A stretch of DNA of 64,000 nt from Oculina patagonica (Eukaryota): positions 45,942,001 to 46,006,000 of the forward strand of contig NC_135759.1 of the NCBI RefSeq assembly GCF_052425735.1. The letters run 5' to 3'. Shown here piece by piece: positions 8,913 through 23,450 of this stretch (its first letter is position 1; every line of letters starts with the position of its first letter). The position numbers and the translations under genes are program-made. The notes under the pieces are model-generated. The model saw only the letters and a list, made by a program, of their open reading frames with translations. It was not told the origin of the DNA and made no database searches.

Positions 8913-11900
8913 ATGGCGAGTCGGCGAAATCAAGGCCCGAAGCACAAATTTCCGTCTAAAGCGAAAGAAATCGCGCTGAACATAAACATTTGGGAAGATC
9001 GCTTCCGAACAAGCACCGATCAAGGAAATCGCAGTCGCCTTGAAGATTTCCAAAATCATCTCCGAGCTCATAGTTTCCAAGTTGAGAAAGCACACGATTC
9101 TGTAGCGGTTTCTGGAAATGCTAGGAACATAAACATCAAGTTGAAGACCACAGATTACGGCAACTCGAGCTTAGGAAAATTTTTCGAGCGACTTCGGCGA
9201 CAGTGGTGTTCGTCCATTTGTCGGCGCGGTGATTCATTCTGGTTGGAATCTGCTGAAAGCCCCAAAAATACTTTCAAGTACAAATCGGACGGGACAAGAC
9301 AACGGCTGCAAGCTACTTCCTTCAGCTTTGGAAGTTTTTACGACCGGGGAACCTATATAAAGCATTGGTCTAGTGATGAAGATGCATCCCTCATTGAAAA
9401 TGGAAATATTCAAAGCGAGTTTACGCACGATACGAAAACTCTGGAGATCTACTTCAAGGCTGGCTTTCCCGAGGGATTCAAAGAGGTTCGCATTGAAATG
9501 GAATACAGACAGTTTGAGAATTATGTTGTAGTGGATGAAAACAATCTAGAGGATCAAGCTGGAGGAACAGTCCACTTTTATTTTCCACTCCAGTGGCCTC
9601 CAAAAGTATCTGAAGGTAACTCTATAATTTTACAAATTAACTCATATTAACTAAATTAAATAATATAAGGGTCCAACAGATTACGAAAAAGAGAAAAAAG
9701 GTTTAAAGCTGAGCTCCAAGACCCCCTACCCGATTTAGTTCAAATTTTGTATCGTTATGAAGTTCTAGTCACCAAGATTCAGTTAAAGCCGCGCTGATAG
9801 ATGTCCGAAGTCTTTTGCAGCATATTCTTTTATCTCATCTCTTTGCGAATGAAAATTCTGCATATTCTTTTATATCTTACTTTAAAGGAGGAGGAGTTAC
9901 CCTAGCAACCGTATAGCAAGAGGGTTATCCAAGCAATTACACGTTTCTTCCTTAGTTTATCGATGTATTTACAATATTTGTATCCTTGTAAGTACGGACC
10001 GGAGTTTTGTTTCAACGTTGGAGTTTAAGCAGTTGACCGAGAAACGTGAGCTAATGTGGCAAGAGAGATCACAAGGCCCTCTTTCCCAAACGTTAACGAC
10101 GACGAAGACGATGATGGTGATAGAATACGGGCTCCTACGGATAACTCGCCTCAGTCACCCCCGGGACAACTTTATTTTGGCTACAAGAAGCCAAACAAGA
10201 ACATGCAATATACCAAGCCGACAAAACAAAAAAAATACGCCCCAAAAGACATAATATTAACTAAGGTTTTGTTTTGTTTATTTCTTCTGAAAGAATGCTA
10301 CTTTTTTGACCCTAGAGCTGGGGTAGCCGTTACCCTGCCTCGTTTTAAACAAGGCCTTAGTCTAGACGTACAATGGTCGTTCTTGTTGTCCCAGTTGTCT
10401 GACAAAGAATCTTGCTTATGCTAACTTTTAGTAAAGTAAATTAATGTATTTGTTCTGTTTTGTTTAGGGGTGATGAACATCAACGACTACACCAACTATG
10501 ACCGTCTGACGCACTTTTTAGGGTGCAGTCGAGAGATCCTGGGATCCAGTTCAGTATTGTGTTTGAGATTTGAATTGAAACAGCAACCGGAAGAAGACGA
10601 GGTAGATTCACCGCTGGGATTAATGGCCGACCTTTCTCGAAGAGGTAATCTTTAGTTAATGGTAAACTAAATAAGGAACTGTACACGTCTTTGTTTAAAG
10701 TTAAGGGGAGCAGGGGTGGCGCGGTGGTAAGAGCGCTCGCCTCCCACCTATGTGGCCCGGGTTTTTTCCCCTCCGGTGTATATTGGGTTGTTTTTTTTTT
10801 TTGTTCTCTTCCTTTTTCCGGTTTTTTCTCCGGGTTCTCCGTTTTTTTTCCCCCCAAAAAAACAAACTCTCCTTTTTCTTTTTTTTCCCTTGCCCCCTCT
10901 TTTTTTAAGTCTATCGATACCCAAAAGACGGCTAGTTCGCACACAAACCAGTACTTATAGTCTATCTTCGTAGACTATTACGACATTTCAGTTACCCAAT
11001 TCCGGAATATCTTCTAAAGCGTCTCACGTTTCGTTAGCCGCTGCTGCTTCTTTTTCTTTCCTTCCTTTNNNNNNNNNNNNNNNNNNNNNNNNNNNNNNNN
11101 NNNNNNNNNNNNNNNNNNNNNNNNNNNNNNNNNNNNNNNNNNNNNNNNNNNNNNNNNNNNNNNNNNNNNNNNNNNNNNNNNNNNNNNNNNNNNNNNNNNN
11201 NNNNNNNNNNNNNNNNNNNNNNNNNNNNNNNNNNNNNNNNNNNNNNNNNNNNNNNNNNNNNNNNNNNNNNNNNNNNNNNNNNNNNNNNNAAATTGTCTTT
11301 AAATTATGTTATCTATGCCTCGTTCAGCTTTGGTGTTAGGACTCCGAGAGTTGGTACTTCCCGGTCTCTTTTTACTTTAGTACCGTTAGTTCCCAGAGTA
11401 TAAAGAAAGTTTTTGCAAAGTTTTTGGGTCGACGCTCGGTAGTTATCGTTTATCTTGAAAACCCTTCCTAATGGACAATATATTGGTCCATATTTGCCAA
11501 TTTGCCCATTATATAGCCAAAATTCCTATGCAGCATGTTAGCGAGCTGAATTGTAATCTAATTTACCTGCTATTTATCTTTGTTAGGCTTTCCTGTCTAC
11601 TTTGCGGCGATGAGGACGAAATCCCCCCGAGGGCCCACAGAAGCTCCAAGGAAACCTGAGCTATCTGACCACAAGATCACGTACGCTTTGGAATGTTTGC
11701 TGTCTCGAGGATACAAAATAAGTGATCGTATTTCCAGAAGGTTTTACGACCTATTACGAAGGGCCACGGACAGGTACGAGTCGCTTCTGGAGAATAAACT
11801 GGTGTCCCCCGAAAAGGTCAGCAAAGCTTTGTACCGACTGGTGACTCTTGTGGAGAATGATCGTTTCTGTCCACTCGAGTACTATCTGGAAAGTCTACTG

Positions 11901-14900
11901 TATGGAGATATGAAGCATTTGACAGCATTTGAATTCGAATTGCCAAAGCACTATGTTTACATACCTCGTCTCATCATAACCCCAACCCAGGATTACCTTC
12001 TGCCCGCGGAATTAGTGGCAGAGAATCGTGTAATCAGAGATTACGGCCACAAGCAGGCGATGCGGATTGCATTCAGAGATGAAGACTTCTCCAAACTGGC
12101 ATCAACGCACCCAGAAGGCCTTAAGCACGTATTGAATGAGCGCGTGATTAACAAGCTTTCAAACAACATAGAGATCGCTGGGCGCAGCTTTGAGTTTCTG
12201 GCGTGTTCCAATAGTCAGCTGCGTGACCATGGCGCATGGCTGTACGCGACAGACGGCGAGCACCGAGTCGCTGACATAAGAGGATCGCTGGGGCAGTTAA
12301 ATGAGATCAGATGTGTAGCAACCTATGTTTCACGAATGGGGCAGTGTTTCTCATCGACAAAGGAAGCGGTCACAGTCAGTATTGAAGTTGGATGCAAAGT
12401 GGAAGAAATTCCAGATGTGGAGGTACAATACGACAACGTATATTTCGAGTGTTGTAAGAACCATAGATCCGGGACATACACCTTTACAGATGGAGTTGGA
12501 AAAATCAGCTCGGCTTTGGCCAGGAAAGTATGTTTATTTATTGTTTTTTACAATTCTTTATACACGGTAATAAAACATCAGGATTCTTATTATTAAAAAT
12601 GCAAATCTAATTACTTATCTAAATACCATGATTGCCTTCCTGAGATTACAGGATAGGCTGTTCCAGAGAGTTGAATCACTTAAGCTGAAACCTATTTTTC
12701 AAATAGTTCGTTCGTGGAAGAGGTGCAACTAGTTTTTTCACGGAGTCTCTCGAAGATTAGGGTGTTCCATTACTTACACCCGCTTTCAGTGTTACGTGCA
12801 TATCTATCTTTCTATATCCATTTTTCGATATCTTTTTTCGTCTTTTTTTTCGGCGTGTTTTTTTAAATTAGCCAATAAAAATCTATATATTCTTTTTTTT
12901 TTTTATAAAAATGTGAGAAAAGGTCAAAAATTTTTTTTTTGGGGTTTTTTGTTTTTTTTTTTTTTTTTTTTTTAAAAACAAAAAAATATATGGAAAGAAA
13001 AAGACAAAAAGGGCGTAAAAGAAATTTAGAAGATAAGTATTCAGGAACAAGACCATTCAAAGATTTATATGCCATTAAGGCTTCCTGAATTTGAGGCAGG
13101 GTACGCAAATCTTTCCAGCCAAGTTTTCGTTATAGGCACTTGGCATCCGCATCATAGGCCGAGGAAATAAGCACGCGAGTGGCACGGCAATAATAATTAA
13201 AATTATACAATAAGCTAATAGTACAATCAAGGAAAGATTTTACTCTGTGTGTATTTTTTTTATCTACTGTTTCACCTTACAAACGTACTAATAGACCTTA
13301 TTCGTATTCTCGGTATAATACGAAGGTATTGGAGTGGAACTTGCAATGGAGGCTCATGCGGGTAATCTTTTTAAATGCAAATGACATAAAGCTGTTTTAA
13401 TGATATTCCCCCGCATGAGCCTCCATTACAAGCTACTTCCAAGCCAATACCGAGAATACGAATATGGTCTATTAACGATAGCCGTCTTTTCAATTTTTTC
13501 AGGTTGCAGACAGCCTCGACCTGGATCCAACTCCGTCAGCCTATCAGATTCGTTTCGGTGGTTGCAAGGGGATGTTAGCAATTGATCCCAGACTTCCACA
13601 AGGAGAGGACCGAGAAATACTGCAATACCGCAAGAGTATGAAAAAATTCGCTTCACCACATTCTGCCCTTGAGATCTGCGAGGCCTCAAAACCAAGTAAG
13701 TAGCGGTTAAACCGTATTTATATTACAGCTTGATTTTTTTTTAATCATCCATAATGAATGCTTCATTGTATTGCAATGGATAAAAAATTGACCATGCAAA
13801 GCGTTCTTTTATTTGATGTGCAGTCATTTTATAAAAGGCTATGTAAACACTGTTACGACGTTTTGTTAGCTTCATTTCTAAACGGAGTTATGCAATAACT
13901 GAGAGAGTTTCCCCGCGCTCATTGGTCTATAGTCATTGGTCATTGAAAGTATAAACCATGAAAATTGCGTAACTTGTAACGCAAAGTAGAGCAGATTTCG
14001 GAAAACTAAAGACATTTTCGCAACTTTACCAAAAAACAGAATCCGGCGAGTTGCGAAGAGTCAGCTAGAACACTCAGGACGAAATTTTCCACACAATCAC
14101 CGACTTCAAGTGGAAAAAAAAGATCTTGCGAGCTGTCACACGCGCGCGATTTCACACTGATTTTTAAATTTATTCGCCGGTAGATTTTTTCATTGTCTAC
14201 ACTCTTACAAACTATAGAAATGACGCCATAAAATGTCCAAAACTTTGCAGTGAAACCACTCGCCTAACGGTTCGTGGTTCCACTTGAGTTTTGAACATTT
14301 TATGGCGTCATTTTTATGATCTATAAGAGTGTAGGTCGATTTGTTAAATGGAATAACGTTTTCCTTTTGCACCAAGGTATGCAGGACAAAACATGTGTAC
14401 ATTAGGTTTTTTTTGGCGGAACAAATTTAAGAGATAGGTAAAGTTCGGATAAAATCGTAATTATCTCATAATTTCATTTTGTTTTTATTTCAGACCTTTT
14501 ATACCTTAATCGTCAGTGTATAATCCTGTTGAATGGACTCGGAGTTCCTGATGAGTCATTTATCAGCCTGCAAGACAACATGCTGCGTAGCCTCGCCTTG
14601 ATGCTGCTCTTTGAAACGGTAGCATTGGATACTCTTGGTCGCGCAAATATCCCAGGTGGCTTGAAAATCACAGCATTGTCACGCAGTGGTGTAAACTTTA
14701 CTCGAGAACCGTTTTTCCGCTCCCTGCTCCTGGCAATTTACAAGAGCCGATTGGGAGACCTACTGCGGAGAGCCCGGATTGCTATCCCAGAAACCCATGG
14801 GCGCCTTTTGATGGGCGTCATAGACGAAACAGGTTCTTTGGAGTATGGCCAGGTTTTTGTTCGTTACTCCAAATCGGTCCGTGAACCAGGAAAAGAGCTA

Positions 14901-17900
14901 ATCACGCTGAAAGGCAAAGTGGTAATCAGCAAAAATCCCTGTTTTCACCCAGGTTAGTTTTTCAGACCCATAGCACAAATGTTTAATGAACATCTAATAA
15001 ACCAGTGTAATTGCTCTGAACCGTATCGCTTTAAATGAATATGGTATGATATGACATATCATGACCGTTAGCAGTGGTGAAAAGTAGGGTTTTGTAACAG
15101 TTGTAATTATGCAAAAGCTCAAGGAACTGACAAAGTGTTGAGCGAGACTTTGTCAGAATTTCATGCGTAATTCGTTTTGTGGCAAGCGAAAAATGATTTT
15201 ACATTAGCTAATCAGTAGCTTCGTTTGCAAGTTTGGATGGAAAATAATCAAAATAAACATCAATGTCTCTTTTTTGGAAGGCCCATGTCAGCCACATTTT
15301 AATGGTATAGTCCAATCCTTAGATTTTTTTCCTTTGTGGCATTATCAGTTACTATGTACTGATCTGTATCATTACACTGCTTCTTTCTTTAGGTGACATG
15401 CGCATATTTCAAGCCGTTGATGTTCGAGTTCTGCACCACTTGGTTGACTGCATTGTGTTTCCCGCCAAAGGACCCAGGCCTCACACTGATGAAATGTCTG
15501 GCTCAGACCTAGATGGCGACAAGTATTTCGTCACGTGGTATGACAAGCTCCTTCCACCAAGGGATGAGAATGTAGACCCGATGGATTTCACATCTCCAGA
15601 CAAAATAGTTTTGCCTAGACCTGTAGAAGTCTCTGACATGATTCAGTTCGTGTCGGATTACATCAAAAATGATCAACTTGGGATCATTGCAAATGCTCAT
15701 CTCGTGCATGCTGACCACGACGAAAAAGGTATGTCAACGCAATAACAATTTGTTATCTCTGGGAGAATAGGGCCATAAGCATAGTGTATGTACTCAATTT
15801 GATCCTTCTAAAAAATTCATTTTCTTTGGGTATGACGTCAAATGGCGTCAACAATAACTGGGTTTCAGTACATGTTCTTGGCGTCAAACACGACATGAAT
15901 CGATGATATATTCTAAAACAATAGCTTGATGGCAAGGTCAAGAATCTGGGACGAATCAGCCACTGAAAGTTTTAGCATCAAAAAATGAAACTTGTTAGTT
16001 TTCAAAATTGTAAAACCCTCATGGGGACTGGGATCCAACCCCTCCCCCTCCTTCCTTGCCACCCATGTACGTGTTGGGGGTTAACATAAATATTTTCTCT
16101 TTTGCTCTCGAGGCATATTTTCCGATGAGTGTATCGAGTTAGCCCACATGCACTCAGAAGCTGTAGATTTTCCAAAGACTGGGAAGTGTCCATCTCTTCC
16201 CAAAGAACTGAGACCTGATCAGTACCCAGACTTCATGATGAAACCCGGGAAACCTCGGTACAAGTAAGTAAAAGCTCACTAATATTGTTCATTTGCTTAT
16301 CTTAGTAATATTGTACTAATATTACACTTACTAATATTTTACACTTACTTATCTTGCTACTTTATTTCATATGCATGCAGACACAGATCTTTTTACCGGC
16401 CTTCAGAACTGTCACATAGGAGAATTTTTGTGTAATTGCGAGAAATTATTTTCACAGCCCTCTACGACCTCTTCCACATGTATCAATAGTTTTTTGTGTA
16501 AATGCCTGCTATAATGTATTTATTTAATTTTCATGGCAAAGAGAGAACACCAAAAAAAAATTAGGCTTTTAAACTTGGGACAAACTTTTGTAAAGACAGT
16601 CAAATCTCGTTATAGCGGACACGCTCGGGGCGTCGTTTAGTGTCCTTTATAGCGAGAGATCCTAATAGCGGGAGTCATTTCCAGTCAAACCTCTCTTGCT
16701 GGGGATCTGGATTTTGTCCGTAATAGCGAGTGTCCGCAATAGCGGGGTGTCCGCAAGGCGAGGGTTGACTGTACAGCAATTTTCCGACGTCTCGAACCTC
16801 CAAAGGGAACGAAAATTGGTTCTGGAAAGTTCGGCAAAATGGAGCAATAAGGGAAACGCGTTTTGGCTCGAGTTATTGGGAGGTTTGAGGAATTGGTATT
16901 CCACTGTAAAAGTATATCATTTTCATTTCCGTTATCTTATCACACGTTGCTAAATTTATATTTTAGTTCCCAAAGGATACTGGGAAAACTATTCCGAAAG
17001 TGCAAGTCGCTTGACCGTGCCCAGCAGTTCTCTGTTGATGCTTCTCAGACCCAGATCACCCCTGATGACGACATGATCGTATCGGGCTACGAGCAATATC
17101 TTGAAGAAGCTAAAGCAGTGAGAAACCGCTATAACACCAAACTGGAGGGACTCATGTCCTTATATGGATTACGAAATGAAGGAGAAGTCATCACTGGTTG
17201 TCTTGTGAGGGTAAACAATCGCCTTTCTGGCAAAACCGATGAGAAGTTCGAAGTGGCGCAAATGATACAAGCAAGTCTTTCCACTTTGCGCGCAAAAACG
17301 CGACACGATTTTTATGAAGAGTTTGGTGGCGAAGACGAGGTGATGGAAGAGTTTGAAGACAACGGCAGTTTTAGCGATGAAGTCCTGATGAAAGCTTCTG
17401 CTTGGTACATGGCAACGTACGGAAAAAGCGACGAAGAAGAGAATGCGACCGAGGTCCAAGTAAGAGCATCTTCGAGTGACTTGCAAGGAAATCAGCAAAG
17501 AAGTGAGGCGGGGGGTCAGGCGAGGCTGCTCAGTTTTCCGTGGGTTGTCGATCGAATCCTGGCAAAGATCAAGGACGCAAAGCAGAAAGAAAGGAAAGAG
17601 AAAGGAATCCAGAAACGCCATGCTCTGAATGCAGTTGGTGACCTCATAACAGTTCAAGCAGCCTACTTCTTTGAAAAGTTCCAATCAGATCTAACTGACG
17701 ATCGCGAGATGCGAATGGAAGAACGTGGTAAGCTACTGAGAATGTTACACCGCCTCCTTGGGGTAAGCCACGTTCCACGCCTGTCTTTATGTGATGCGTC
17801 GCTGACGGGAATCTCCGTGGGTGATGAAGAAAGACGCCATATTGAGATTTATGCACATTACAAGTGGAACGCTTCTGATCAAGAGCAGTATGAGTACCTA

Positions 17901-20900
17901 CGTTGGCTCGGAAAAGCACTGACTCAAGATGGTAAAGTTGAAATTCAAAGATACCCAGCTGCTTTGTATTTTCAACGTTCTCAAGGTAGGGAATAAGCCA
18001 GTAAAATATGCTTTGGTCTGACGTAGTTTAAATTGTATTTTACAATGGTATACTGTATTCTATTTTGCTCAAGGTTGCTTTTGTTCTAATCTTTTACCGG
18101 ATTTGACGTCTTCTGTGGCTTCGTACAGAATGAGTGGAGTATTTAGCTTACGCAGCCCAATGTGAACACCTTAAATTAAAGTTACATTCAAAGCACTAAA
18201 ATTAAAATGTTTAAATTACAATAAAAACTTACGAAATCAGTTGCATTTGCTGTTTTCTGCTGTGTTCCCCGTCGTAACATAGCAAAAAATATTCCTTTGC
18301 CCGCCGGTTTTACGTTTACTGAGCAAACAACCATGACAACAGGCGTATGTTACCTTTTTGTGGTACAGTGTTTGGAATCTTATTAACGGAATGGTAAAAG
18401 TTTGTTAAGATTAATTACAAGGCTGCTATGATAACAAATACGTTTAAATGTATGGTGCAAGAAGAAACATTCGTTTTTTGTCATCCAGGGTTAGTGAGAC
18501 AGCAATACTACATCACAGCGGATTCCAACAGACTGCTGAAGAGTGCGTATGTCGGTGTTCATGTTCAGCGGTGTCCTCGCCTCCTTCATCTTCTATTGAT
18601 TGTGATGCACTGGGGCCGGCGGCGGCGTCTTAATGGAAACTCAAGACACACCTTCCTTTCCGATGAAAATTTAGCCACACTGTTTGTCGCATTTTGTGAG
18701 AAATCTGGATTCATTCACGAGGTAAGTCGTTCTCAGAAGTCGAGATTTTGTAGATGTGGGATAATGATTCAGTGAATTAAACAAATTGGCCACGTTTTTC
18801 CATGGTTCACATTCTTTTAGACCATAGAAATGACGTTATAAAAGTTTCAACGCTCAAGAGGGAACATGGGCGTAGCAAGTAGCTTTATGTCTAAGTTCTG
18901 AACATTTCATGGCGTCGTTTCTATGAGCTATGGTCATGGAGACTTTGGCAATATGTCGTTGATTTCTTTTACGATAACATCAAAATATGCCGGCCAACTA
19001 AGGGTAAATCAGTACGTAAATCATTTCCTCTCCCAATTTAAAATAAACAAAACTTCATTTTATTTTTACAAGTCAATTTTCTGCTGTCGTTAGTTAAATA
19101 AAAACAAATTTCTTACAACACTGCATAATGAATTAATTTGTGGGAGTTCGGTGGTCTAGCCGTTTGCGGGTCTGAGTTCTTGAGATGTGGTGATCGATGC
19201 TTGGTCTCCATAAAAATTTTGTGGTGCGTCGTTACATTGTCCAATTGTTTTGGGCAACTTAAAAAATGCAAAAACCTGCAGCGGGCTAGATTCCTATCCA
19301 GTTAAAGTTGCCTTACGCTACATTTTCCGGAGTTAAGCGCAGTCACCTTGTGCCACTTAGTGCAACTGAAGGCTAAACCTTGCTGCTCTCATTTCTCTCA
19401 ATGCTATCTTTCAGGTTGGCAGCGACGAGCTGCAGAACTTTAGTTCCAGTCTCCTTGGATTACCATCCAGTGCTACACAGTCTGAGGCCGAGGAGCTGTG
19501 GAGCCGTGAAGTCCTGGGTGAGGCTTCTCAAGGAAGACTGAAAGGCTTCAAAGACGATACCACTCCTGGTCATGTACTGATCAAGTTCTTTGAGCACTAC
19601 AGCACACCAGCCGACAATGACCCCCTTCATATACGAGTCATGAAGAATCCAGTGAAAAGCAGTGAAACACTTTATCCAAACGTCTCTGTAGAAGAAAGTG
19701 GTCGCTTCTCTGACGCGGCGCTTCACGCATTTCACGAGCTTGCGCAGTGCTGTGGCCTGGACAGCCTCACTGCGTCACTGAACACAGAGAGCACGCGTGA
19801 GCTGCAAGAAACGCTGAACATGCCAAACACGACTTGGGGCGCACTTCGGTTTGCTGAGGAGTTTGTTCGAGTCAAGTTATCAACACTGACGACAGCACAG
19901 ATCACTTTACGGCCATGTAAGTCTTTTTGTAATAGGCCGCCTTCTGTGATTAAGGTACTTAAGCGGATAAAGAAAGGTTTGCATGCAATATCGCGCAAAA
20001 TTTATAAAAATAACAAGAATCAGTTTGTTGATTTTTTTTAAAAGTAGACGAGTAACTAGGGCAAGACATTTGGTAAAAATTGAAAAGCGATCTATGGTTA
20101 AAAATTTGTTTAAAACAAGCTTTTGACTACCAGTCTGTAGTCTTTATTTTTTGTAGTCTTTATTACTCGTTAAGGACTACAGACTGATAGTCGAAAGCTT
20201 GTTTCAAAAAAATTGGTAACCAGAGATCGCTTTTCAATTTTTTACCAATTGTTGATTTGCGTTTGCATATTCCCCTTGCGTTATTTTCGTTTTCTTGAGA
20301 TAATTTTCCTTATGCATAGCAAACGTTATAATCGCTGTTTGTATTTCAGTCTAACATGCATCACGACCATATTTATGTTTCCCTCGCTAAAAGAAGTCAT
20401 TTATATCGGCATCACGATTGCTGGAATCAGAACCACAAGTATTTGGTAATTATCTTTAGAAAGCTTACATAGCATATAAAGAACGATTTAATGCCAGTTA
20501 GTGTCCTCCAGGTTTTCACATACAAAAAAATACAACCTTGAAAAAAAATGAACGTCCTTTATTCATAAGTATAATATTTACACCTAGAGCTATGATGATT
20601 GTCTTAAAGCTATATTTATAGTTTTCTCTTTCGATATTTTTAGCTCAGAAGTCCGCCGGCTATATTCTTGAGGCAACAGGGAACTACCTCACACTGCACA
20701 GCGTTCAGAACGAACTGGAGAAGATAGAAGAAACCTGTACATCATACATCTACGACCATACTGTTAGTGGTGCTACTCGCTTCTTGTTCCTGGGTCAAAA
20801 CGGACCAGAAGATGCAGTTACTTTCAAACAGTTGAGAAAAGGCGACTTTGCCGTCAACCTCAATCAAATAAATGGACTTCTGTTGAGCCTTAATCTTAAC

Positions 20901-21803
20901 GATGCACCTGCTAGAGATTTCGCAGAAACAAAGTTCCGCAGCATGCTTTCATCCCAGCTGGAGGTATTCAAACGGGAATATCTGCCTTATGTGCATGGGA
21001 CAGACAGACTCAAAATCAAGGCGGAATTTGGAAGCATTTATGTTGAGAACGTACAGAGTCTGATGTCACGTGTTGAAATCATTGAGAACATCTTGAGTCT
21101 GCACGCGGATCCTAAAAACCAGCCAGGTAACAAGAAAAACCAACATTTGATGAAGCACAAGTTTATACCAATTTCACGTGGAGCTGATGGTTGGACTGCA
21201 GCGTTTGAATCAAGTCGCCAGGAGTCCGCCGAAGAAACGTACACTGTGGTGATGAAAGAAGGCAGAAATCACACTATAACCGTCATTTACGACAGGGATT
21301 TGCAGTTCAGTGATGTAGAAATTCCACCCATCAACTGGGTTGTAGTCGACGTCAAAGCTCCACGCCCTGCCAGGGCGAAATCACGTGACGTCGATTTCCG
21401 CGTCACCGTGTGTTCCGAGCGGAGGCTGGAGGGAGAAGAGAAAGATGAAGTTATGAAGTCGCCAAATTATGAAATCTTTAAGACGAAGTCCATCATCAGC
21501 AAGTCTCCCAATGGAGGTCCAGGACTGGAACTTGCAAACGAGTTCCTTAAGAAGGTGGCTTTCGTCCGCCATGATAAAACGACGATGTACCATATCTACA
21601 ATGGACGTTTGTGGCTCCAAGTGAAAGAGGTCCAAAAGTATGAAGTAAGAGGTACAAGGTTCCTTAACTCTCCCAGCAAGAACTTCACTGAATTGCAGAT
21701 ATGGGGATGGTTCAACGGCAAAGATGACGAGGAGGTGGCGATGAATGTTGCCAAAGACTTGTGGTCAGCGACTAAAAGGCTGCGACCACATATTAACGGC
21801 TAA
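8913..21803 (+). CDS. Eukaryotic (RNAi-type) RNA-dependent RNA polymerase with long C-terminal extension, 11 exons, ~1957 aa
   Basis: Exons 8913-9615, 10468-10644, 11587-12527, 13503-13695, 14494-14952, 15393-15728, 16113-16263, 16967-17985, 18489-18721, 19415-19916, 20644-21803; all GT-AG and phase-compatible (sum 5874 nt). Motifs: FLACSNSQLRD, SRMGQCFS, FTDGVGKIS, PSAYQIRFGGCKGML, LNRQ, KNPCFHPGD, catalytic SGSDLDGDKY (15506-15520), AVDFPKTG, YPDFM. Confidence 0.92.
10706..10930 (+). mobile_element. tRNA-derived SINE; 3' part corrupted by low-quality homopolymer sequence
   Basis: Head GGGAGCAGGGGTGGCGCGGTGGTAAGAGCGCTCGCCTCCCACC matches the cleaner copy at 45631-45894. Confidence 0.75.
11069..11289. 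other. Assembly gap (N-run) in RdRP intron 2
   Basis: Run of n. Confidence 1.
12600..13190 (-). mobile_element. Decayed 3' fragment of a CR1/L2-group LINE ORF2, interrupted by low-complexity sequence
   Basis: Minus-strand translations RATRVLISSAYDADA..LGWKDL..MAYKSLNGLVPEYLSSKF and LRDSVKKLVAPLPRTNYLKNRFS..LWN resemble CR1/L2 ORF2 C-termini. Confidence 0.7.
13289..13474. mobile_element. Foldback MITE (TAATAGACC...GGTCTATTA)
   Basis: ~28-bp TIR plus inner inverted arms (gcaatggaggctcatgcggg / cccgcatgagcctccattac). Confidence 0.8.
14205..14330. mobile_element. Palindromic MITE; related copy at ~18818-18940
   Basis: atagaaatgacgccataaaatgtccaaaact / agttttgaacattttatggcgtcatttttatg arms; similar arms recur at ~18820. 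Confidence 0.65.
16597..16908. mobile_element. Two adjacent Tc1/mariner-type MITEs (CAG...CTG ends, TA flanks)
   Basis: cagtcaaatctcgttatagcggac ... gtccgcaaggcgagggttgactgta, then tacagc ... ccactgta. Confidence 0.6.
20070..20248. mobile_element. Foldback palindromic MITE
   Basis: ~80-bp inverted arms (aaaattgaaaagcgatc...ccagtctgtagtc / gactacagactga...gatcgcttttcaattttt). Confidence 0.75.
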
Positions 21804-21904
21804 GGGTTAAACTTAGCTTTTTTATTAAATGATCAAGATGTAAAATTTGCCTTTCATCCGATGTTTGTTTCCATGGAAACAGGTGAGGCAAAGACACAAT
21901 ATTC

Positions 21905-22018: not shown

Positions 22019-22779
22019 TGCGAGTTGGATTGTGGTCCTTTAAACTTCTTTTTGGTTAAACTGACAGTGAGCTGCTATCATTAATACATACTTGAATTAA
22101 AATATCCAGCTAAAACTATACAGACCAAAAAAAAACAAAGCTTAACATTAAGTGAAGTATTTTAGCAGTCTTCGTGCTGGCATTGTCAACTTTAATTTTT
22201 TAGGTATTCTGCTCTGGATTTATGGCCTGCTTTTTTAAGTTACACATTTGAAAATCATTTTTAGAAAGTTAGTTGTTTAACATATATATTTGACGAAATT
22301 ATACATAATTGAATTACAACAACGTAGTAGGTCATTTAGAGAAGGGAAACTGTATGATTATCTCGAATTTTCTACTTTTTAAGTCAGCAGACGACAAGCG
22401 GGGGAGATAAGTGACCCGCCGGAGGCGGAGACGGACAGGGCGCGGACGTGAGCACAGGAGAAACCGGAGGAACGGAGCAGGCGAACCCCCGGGAGGGGAA
22501 GAGGACGGAACAGCAGTCCGCGGGAAATCCATGATGACAAGTGGGTCACCCAGGAGACCACAAGCCAGATGAGCGGAAAGAGAAGGGCGCGACTGCACGC
22601 CGACCGATCTGTCCACCCGCGGACCACCCCGGCCGCACGCCCCCCGAGGGACAGGGGCAACAGAGCAACACAGCAGAGCAGGGACCGGGGACGCCGGCGC
22701 CCCCCCCCCCGTAGATTTTTTTACAAGGCAATAGAATTTGTTTTTTAGTTGCACAATATCCTGCAATACAACACATCAC

Positions 22780-23450
22780 TGACTTGATGGGGCTAGGCTG
22801 TCAAGAGGTGTGGCCTGTGACATCCTCCTGCGTCGTGTTACACATGACGAAGATTTTAATTACTCTCTATATTTTTCAACAGTGAATACTCTCTCTTAAA
22901 TTGATTTAGCAGACTGTACAGCTTGTAAATATTTGGAGTTTGTTGACTGTCAGGTAGTACAGCTGTTCAGATCTTCACATGGCCACCAATCTTTGCAGGA
23001 TGGCTGCTGTAGAGTGTTGCTTGTCGTGTGTGGTGGGTTGAGCAGGCGGTTTGTTGTTCCGCCTTGTTTTTGTTGCTCTGTTTCTTTCTGAGTCACATGT
23101 ATGAGGCTCTTTGTTTTTTTGTTCTAAGTGTCTGCTTCTTGAGTGTGTCGTACCACTGTCCTGTTAATGGCTGAGCTACTTAGACTGTGTCATGGTGGTC
23201 CTGCTCTTCTAGTGAGTCTAGGTCCTTTTGTTACTTGTTCTCTCTCAGCATTTTTAGCTGTTCTCTCTTAGCTGCTGCTAGAGGCCTGATGACACTGTGT
23301 GTTAGTGATGGGTTTTCACTACCAGCTAGATGACTCACTGTGTGTAGAGACAAATGTTGTCAGCAGATTTTTGCTTCTGGTCAGTTTATACCAATTCAGA
23401 TTTGCTCATAGAGCCTTTGATTTACAGAATGTATCATTGGTTTGTAAAAA
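22780..23450 (-). mobile_element. Possible highly decayed Ty3/Gypsy 3' remnant (integrase tail, PPT, LTR start)
   Basis: Minus strand gives KDLDSLEEQD and RSE..PD-like fragments, then a purine tract AGGAGGA directly followed by TGTCACA. CpG-depleted, many stops. Confidence 0.35.

Follow-up and report, generated by a model that had tools for sequence, protein, structure and literature searches.

The stretch analysed here is 64,000 nucleotides of the Oculina patagonica genome (NCBI RefSeq assembly GCF_052425735.1, contig NC_135759.1, positions 45,942,001 to 46,006,000 of the forward strand) and is hereafter called the window. It contains a multi-exon cellular RNA-dependent RNA polymerase (RdRP) gene on the plus strand, at about 8.8-21.8 kb. 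The terminal exon of this gene encodes a domain predicted to fold as a triphosphate-tunnel barrel, and its best structural match is RESC1/RESC2 (GRBC1/2, GAP1/2; PDB 8cdp, 8fn4, 8fn6) of the kinetoplastid RNA editing substrate-binding complex. We consider it likely, with a rough probability of 0.58, that this tunnel is a catalytically inert, RESC2-type binder of the 5'-triphosphate (5'-ppp) end of RNA. We favour this reading because of the RESC-type fold, the loss of metal ligands, the retained arginines, the fusion to an RdRP, the sequence constraint and the precedent of RESC2. The exon is as follows.

20644..21803, plus strand: terminal exon of the RdRP gene, encoding the whole RESC-like/triphosphate-tunnel-like domain (~385 codons and the stop)

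Predicted Fold and Structural Matches

The ~385-residue domain was modelled with AlphaFold2 on an alignment of 32 sequences from corals, scallops, oysters and amphioxus (alignment A2; residue numbering starts at window position 20649). The model has a predicted local distance difference test (pLDDT) score of 84 and a predicted template modelling score (pTM) of 0.83. DSSP assigns ten main strands and five helices, and places a hairpin at the N-terminus and a helix at the C-terminus. The terminal elements are encoded at the following positions.

20685..20885, plus strand: N-terminal helix (residues 13-29) and three-strand beta-hairpin region (residues 42-71)
21729..21791, plus strand: C-terminal helix (residues 361-381, pLDDT 94-96), at the position of the TTM plug helix

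The plug helix of the TTM fold is used here as defined in PMC8233210. The model was compared with the PDB by Foldseek, and Z values were obtained with VIA-align. The matches are listed below.

RESC1-RESC2 / RESC-A: Foldseek E 4e-13; VIA-align Z 21.0, 20.0 and 19.8; 268-290 residues aligned
S. pombe Pct1: Foldseek E 1e-7; VIA-align Z 13.6
Yeast Cet1: Foldseek E 7e-6; VIA-align Z 14.1
T. cruzi Cet1: Foldseek E 3e-5; VIA-align Z 12.8
Mimivirus triphosphatase: Foldseek E 2e-4; VIA-align Z 9.4
CYTH / ThTPase / YgiF / class IV cyclases: Foldseek E 5e-4 and weaker; VIA-align Z 6-8

All of the significant PDB matches are either tunnel proteins or barrels of the Med18 type, the latter with VIA-align Z 7-8. 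The matches among Swiss-Prot models include Cet1 orthologues and CTL1. The original prediction, made from the DNA letters, had proposed a Cet1/CYTH triphosphate-tunnel fold, to be checked with AlphaFold and Foldseek. The model is a beta-barrel and its best solved matches are all triphosphate-tunnel proteins; neither a fold other than a beta-tunnel nor unrelated best matches were obtained. The assignment to the TTM/CYTH-like superfamily at the fold level, as an antiparallel beta-barrel tunnel with a C-terminal plug helix, is as secure as prediction allows.

The likeness to RESC1 and RESC2 extends to the architecture. DSSP and the alignments show an imperfect barrel of ~ten strands, five helices, the N-terminal hairpin, and helices and short strands inserted inside the barrel. 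The match to 8cdp_A has Z 21.0 and a root-mean-square deviation of 3.8 over 268 residues, while 8fn4_1 and 8fn6_1 align with Z 20 across model residues 8-384. The RESC matches begin at model residues 8-38 and the Cet1 matches at residues 77-89 in the VIA-align ranges. The N-terminal region at 20685-20885, aligned to RESC1/2 but not to Cet1, may correspond in the model to the RESC hairpin, which mediates RESC1-RESC2 dimerisation (PMC10201420).

CYTH and TTM tunnels bind inorganic triphosphate (PPPi), thiamine triphosphate (ThTP), ATP and polyphosphate (PMC8233210), and the CYTH proteins match the model with Z 6-8. These are the grounds for supposing an allosteric sensor for the polymerase, in which the tunnel would bind a small phosphorylated ligand such as a nucleoside triphosphate, a nucleotide second messenger, PPPi or inorganic polyphosphate. 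Such a sensor is very improbable. The nearest relatives are RNA-end binders and RNA triphosphatases, not the small CYTH enzymes, and the fold variant found here is repeatedly fused to RNA-handling domains.

The relation to CYTH and Cet1 is visible at the fold level only. The Pfam families CYTH (PF01928) and mRNA_triPase (PF02940) match neither the window exon nor any of the 32 family members at E<=1, and searches of Pfam and NCBIfam with the exon gave no CYTH/Cet1 match. Searches of PDB sequences by phmmer and by hmmsearch with the A2 profile gave no match at E<=10, kinetoplastid RESC1/2 included. The ESM Atlas feature search returned noise alone (scores <=0.47). RESC1/2 thus differ from the coral domain in showing no detectable sequence similarity to it, with ~11% identity in the structural alignment. 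They also differ in context: RESC1/2 form a standalone mitochondrial heterodimer, whereas the coral domain is the C-terminus of an animal cellular RdRP.

Residues of the Tunnel

TTM/CYTH enzymes have a tunnel whose first strand carries an N-terminal ExExK motif and whose last strand carries a C-terminal ExE motif, with a basic wall opposite. The ExExK motif coordinates metal and binds substrate, and the ExE motif provides ligands for metals 1 and 2 (PMC8233210). The strands considered here are the following.

21006..21047, plus strand: first barrel strand, residues 120-133, RLKIKAEFGSIYVE; the ExExK site, here (K/R)-x-(K/A/T)-x-(E/T)-F-G
21393..21422, plus strand: strand with D249-x-R251, then S256-x-R258; two invariant arginines
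21555..21596, plus strand: strand 303-316, KVAFVRHDKTTMYH, with R307 and Y314; motif B of the original prediction
21678..21716, plus strand: last barrel strand, residues 344-356; single acidic E348 kept, C-terminal ExE reduced to E-x-(Q/T/K)

Tunnel-lining residues and the equivalences with Cet1 and RESC2 were assigned from strand periodicity and position, and the residue alignment with Cet1 in the original prediction was compared through strand periodicity. In the first strand, the odd positions are hydrophobic in 32/32 sequences. Position 122 is basic in 22/32 and acidic in 2/32, and position 124 is K, A or T and acidic in 0/32. Position 126 is E in 19/32 and T in 11/32 (corals have E, bilaterians T or R), and it is followed by F127 and the invariant G128. 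The window itself has K/K/E at 122/124/126. The ExExK hallmark is absent in 32/32, and in the alignment this strand keeps the ExExK-F-G layout but has other residues where the glutamates would be. The replacement of the ExE of motif A by KxK, noticed in the original prediction, is true in the window, and the same loss of acidic residues at 122 and 124 extends to the family.

The other motifs named in that prediction were all found as well, in one open plus-strand frame that ends in a terminal helix and the stop at 21801-21803. They are RLKIKAEFGSIY from 21006, DVDFRVTVCSE at 21387-21419, FVRHDKTTMY from 21561, and then LWLQVKEV and FTELQIW. They are not chance resemblances, because they lie inside a domain that is conserved in corals, bivalves and amphioxus and has dN/dS of 0.23.

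R251 and R258 are present in 32/32 sequences, and D249 and S256 in 31/32. These two arginines are candidate ligands of the gamma-phosphate. R307 is present in 29/32 and Y314 in 30/32. In the last strand, position 348 is acidic in 30/32, and position 350 is Q, T, K or G and acidic in 0/32. The remaining basic residues shift in position between corals and bilaterians, while their number stays high, and many Lys and Arg are at polar positions of strands. As judged from strand periodicity, R251, R258, R307 and further Lys/Arg would be placed inside the tunnel as the opposing basic wall. The domain is not expected to be a metal-dependent hydrolase, because ExExK is replaced, ExE is reduced, Pfam gives no match and extra elements are present.

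The domain shares with Cet1, Pct1 and CTL1 (PF02940) and with TTM/CYTH proteins the tunnel fold, arginines on later strands and the C-terminal helix; like that of Cet1, its first strand finishes with F-G. It differs from Cet1 and the TTM enzymes in having (K/R)x(K/A/T)x(E/T) instead of ExExK and a single Glu instead of ExE, as well as in the extra N-terminal elements and the insertion. In these respects, RESC1 and RESC2 are the nearer parallel. They are Cet1-like tunnels without two of the three metal glutamates (PMC10201420), and the coral domain resembles them in losing metal-binding glutamates and keeping basic tunnel residues. The inactive RESC2 tunnel holds the 5'-ppp nucleoside of guide RNA via K311/R359/R402/R424, while RESC1, which is without two of those four basic residues, is inert and has no RNA in its tunnel (PMC10201420). 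R251/R258 and R307 are compatible by position with RESC2 R359 and R424, in that the offsets of the aligned ranges agree. RESC2 binds the 5'-triphosphate end of RNA without hydrolysis, and by analogy the coral domain may do the same.

Fusion to the RdRP Gene

The terminal exon is part of the RdRP gene, because colinear homologues, splice phases and the synteny in two other corals all place it there. The parts of the gene and its 3' end are as follows.

11580..16264, plus strand: RdRP catalytic-core exons (PF05183; Pfam and tblastn), with the DLDGD motif in the open reading frame (ORF) at 15398-15745
19568..19916, plus strand: preceding exon, spliced to the terminal exon; found by tblastn with P0070 residues 1357-1467 and conserved with amphioxus and bivalve RdRPs
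21824..21829, plus strand: ATTAAA, likely polyadenylation signal, 20 nt past the stop, read directly from the sequence

The Pfam RdRP family (PF05183) matches the ORFs at 11580-12596 (E 8e-42), 14529-14957 (E 2e-27) and 15398-15745 (E 6e-38). Upstream, the ORF at 8793-9650 matches the Pfam family of the metazoan RdRP-associated PH-like domain. Full-length RdRPs from scallop (P0014) and amphioxus (P0070) are colinear on the window from 9198 to 21596, and full-length bivalve and amphioxus proteins contain both the RdRP core and the tunnel domain. The order PH, RdRP, RdRP_head, unannotated ORF and tunnel ORF on one strand is also seen in two other corals.

The acceptor of the terminal exon is the AG at 20642-20643, preceded by a polypyrimidine tract. 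The frame is open back to this acceptor, and the donor GTAAGT at 19917-19922 leaves a single base that makes an in-phase junction with the terminal exon (T + CT = Ser); the exon start is therefore set at 20644. The stop is the TAA at 21801-21803, and the downstream ATTAAA fits 20644-21803 being the terminal exon. The original prediction had rightly called this a terminal RdRP exon, but the span it gave (20950-21803, or ORF 20784-21803) was too short. The mechanical ORF start, a TTG at 20784, was considered as the exon start and rejected, as the frame is open farther upstream to the acceptor. The preceding exon at 19568-19916 gave no KH match in Pfam, and its earlier label as 'KH-like' was not confirmed by sequence.

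Proposed Ligand and Alternatives

The tunnel, having R251, R258, R307 and clade-variable lysines and lacking the metal glutamates, would bind a 5'-triphosphate and would not hydrolyse it. The original prediction had likewise proposed a basic tunnel binding or shielding the 5'-triphosphate, a function in keeping with the experiments on RESC2 (PMC10201420). Direct products of RdRPs carry a 5'-triphosphate (PMC6396948), and the enzyme's own product is thus the obvious candidate ligand. The likeliest ligand would be RNA that the RdRP of this polypeptide has itself initiated de novo; a 5'-ppp template is the other candidate. Binding could tether, protect or mark the RNA, beside a terminal uridylyltransferase (TUTase)-like module located between the polymerase and the tunnel.

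Several points weigh against this reading, and some of them favour other functions. RESC1, whose tunnel holds no RNA, matches the model as well as RESC2 does. Med18 is a related barrel with no phosphate ligand, and it matches the model as noted above. The domain might accordingly be a structural or protein-interaction barrel without a phosphate ligand, like RESC1 or Med18/Med20, serving for RdRP dimerisation or the docking of a partner. The N-terminal hairpin in the model, which is the dimerisation element of RESC1-RESC2, is in line with this, and a standalone tunnel protein of amphioxus (P0015, see below) could be a heterodimer partner. We find such a role unlikely. The invariant R251 and R258, together with D249, alternate with hydrophobic residues and are accompanied by R307, a pattern expected of a polar ligand tunnel and not of a surface for packing. 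The number of basic residues is held across clades despite their shifting positions, and RESC1 itself is without two of the four basic ligands.

Other points concern a possible metal site. D215, D234, D249 and E348 vary hardly at all and, to judge from the alignment, might make up an unconventional one, in which E348 could be the first Glu of ExE, the central ligand of metal 1 (PMC8233210). AtTTM1/2 are also without ExExK and ExE, and AtTTM2 is nonetheless a pyrophosphatase in vitro (PMC8233210). Together with the fold, which is that of Cet1-type RNA triphosphatases, these points favour an atypical but active RNA 5'-tri- or polyphosphatase with a non-canonical metal site, trimming the ppp of RdRP products to pp or p. 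An unrelated protein, PIR-1, trims the 5'-ppp of RdRP products in nematodes. For the coral domain, we hold an active enzyme to be quite unlikely. ExExK is missing from all members, which have basic or neutral residues in place of both glutamates, and the inactive RESC1/2 are closer to the model than Cet1 (Z 21 vs 14). Moreover, Cet1 loses its activity when any one of its three metal glutamates is mutated (PMC10201420).

Two further points weaken the preferred reading, a RESC2-type binder of 5'-ppp RNA. Amphioxus has the same type of RdRP and no detectable 5'-polyphosphorylated secondary small interfering RNAs (siRNAs) (PMC6396948). The equivalence to K311/R359/R402/R424, assigned by position, and the inward-facing residues, assigned by periodicity, are only compatible with this reading.

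TUTase-like Module Upstream of the Tunnel

Further exons, lying between the polymerase head and the tunnel, were recognised through a model of the amphioxus homologue and a separate alignment (A3).

16962..18715, plus strand: exons of the region from head to tunnel, with the TUTase-like fold
17640..18715, plus strand: exons of the TUTase-like nucleotidyltransferase (NTase) module itself

The linker model covers ~500 residues of the amphioxus protein (P0070:935-1469) and has modest confidence (pLDDT 61). It matches TbTUT4 (E 3e-6, template modelling score (TM) 0.63 by target), GLD-2-type poly(A) polymerases and TUT1. Pfam searches of the linker regions gave nothing except a weak DUF7752 match. 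In place of the catalytic DxD of active enzymes, HxE is found in the coral and VxE in amphioxus; scallops have ExD, and oysters either TxD or TxE. The module is probably inactive or atypical (a pseudo-NTase) in most lineages, because the DxD carboxylates are degenerate.

Family and Distribution

Among 1.8 billion representative proteins, a search returned no more than 15 relatives of the exon product. The closest named relative is a protein of Desmophyllum pertusum. Profile and region searches added coral ORFs at the exon level and full-length RdRPs of scallop, oyster and Branchiostoma with the C-terminal tunnel domain. The invariant positions in A2 are H116, G117, G128, F172, W230, R251 and R258. 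The exon is under purifying selection, as the dN/dS value given above was obtained over 313 codons against the Desmophyllum orthologue.

A standalone member and some divergent ones were also observed. Branchiostoma has, besides the RdRP-fused P0070, a standalone tunnel domain of 403 aa (P0015), which keeps R251, R258, R307 and E348. By analogy, P0015 could pair with the fused P0070 as RESC1 does with RESC2. In corals, P0004, P0005 and P0007 are divergent paralogues, 31-35% identical to the window exon. R251 and R258 are present in all three and R307 is replaced (H, L or Q); the acidic residue at 348 is gone in two of them (M, A), and P0005 has D. Like RESC1, these three forms of the domain are possibly inert.

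The Same Fold in Other Proteins

The one Pfam family with a sequence signal to the coral domain is probably a distant relative and does not include it. DUF7903 (PF25475) matches the window exon with 11.5 bits (E 0.14), under its gathering threshold of 26.5 bits. Its sequence signal is weak across the family, with 5/32 members matching and a best E of 4e-5.

At the structural level, variants of the fold are found more widely. In the ESM Atlas, the TM of the fold variant is 0.64/0.62 for DUF7903 (plants), 0.66 for DUF7905 (fungi) and 0.56 for the SLS1 C-terminal beta-barrel (PF20778). A cnidarian KH_1 protein family of ~553 aa (68 members) has the tunnel fold variant with TM 0.68 by query, and an oomycete KH family has it too. 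From these Atlas models, KH plus tunnel seems to be a recurrent architecture. The fold variant also occurs beside RNA-handling partners, in a fusion with a poly(A) polymerase-like NTase and in a protein annotated as a decapping nuclease, as well as in a kinetoplastid-type 'guide RNA binding complex subunit 2'. DUF7903, DUF7905, SLS1 and the cnidarian KH family differ from the coral domain in that none is fused to an RdRP and none has a function known to be connected with RNA interference (RNAi).

Further matches in Swiss-Prot are yeast mitochondrial Sls1 (residues 286-641, E 1.2e-7) and S. pombe Q10338 ('Uncharacterized protein C582.04c', residues 185-581, E 1.4e-8). C582.04c may be the RNAi factor Dsh1, a bridge between Dicer and the RdRP complex; this identity is given as a lead only.

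Novelty and Meaning

The fold itself and the pseudo-triphosphatase as a 5'-ppp reader are known already. What appears to be new is its placement in an animal RdRP, beside a TUTase-like module. In the open-access literature searched, no paper was found that connects cellular RdRPs to a domain of the triphosphate-tunnel or triphosphatase-like kind, and the tunnel domain is not mentioned in Pinzon et al. 2019 (PMC6396948). Pfam has no family for the tunnel domain, though the RdRP-associated PH and head domains have families.

What cellular RdRPs do in non-nematode animals is not settled. In amphioxus, RdRPs are intact and expressed, and no secondary siRNAs were found (Pinzon et al. 2019, PMC6396948). 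A RESC2-like tunnel on the RdRPs of coral, bivalve and amphioxus leads to a testable idea, namely that the enzyme recognises or retains 5'-triphosphate RNA ends. If this is true, the principle of the pseudo-triphosphatase as a 5'-ppp reader, so far known from trypanosome mitochondria only, would extend to animals. It would also link DUF7903, DUF7905 and SLS1_C to a plausible role in binding RNA ends.

A broader proposal is tentative and, in our judgement, doubtful. The TUTase-like module and the RESC-like tunnel might constitute a built-in unit for 5'-triphosphate RNA, related to the guide-RNA machinery of kinetoplastids (TUTases and RESC1/2). One unrecognised pan-eukaryotic superfamily of non-catalytic 5'-ppp readers might then unite DUF7903, DUF7905, Sls1, the KH-tunnel proteins of cnidarians and oomycetes and, possibly, an RNAi factor of fission yeast. 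In non-nematode animals, the ppp end would in that case serve as a mark by which RdRP products are recognised.

Annotation in Desmophyllum and Flanking Sequence

In the annotation of Desmophyllum pertusum, the RdRP gene is represented by three proteins: an RdRP fragment, an RdRP_head fragment and the hypothetical protein OS493_003291. The tunnel ORF as a standalone gene, as split in that annotation, was rejected by the synteny and the full-length homologues. For the orthologous exon of this species (MU825397.1, L001:9331-10462), the alignment is broken into two parts by a frame shift of one base close to residue 322/323 (10278 to 10280). This shift is either genuine or a mistake in the assembly.

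Shortly after the end of the RdRP gene, the window has GC-rich low-complexity stretches at 22330-22780 and 23810-24120, where Arg/Gly/Pro-rich ORFs on both strands overlap. These stretches could be repeats, or else a CpG-rich promoter region of the next gene.

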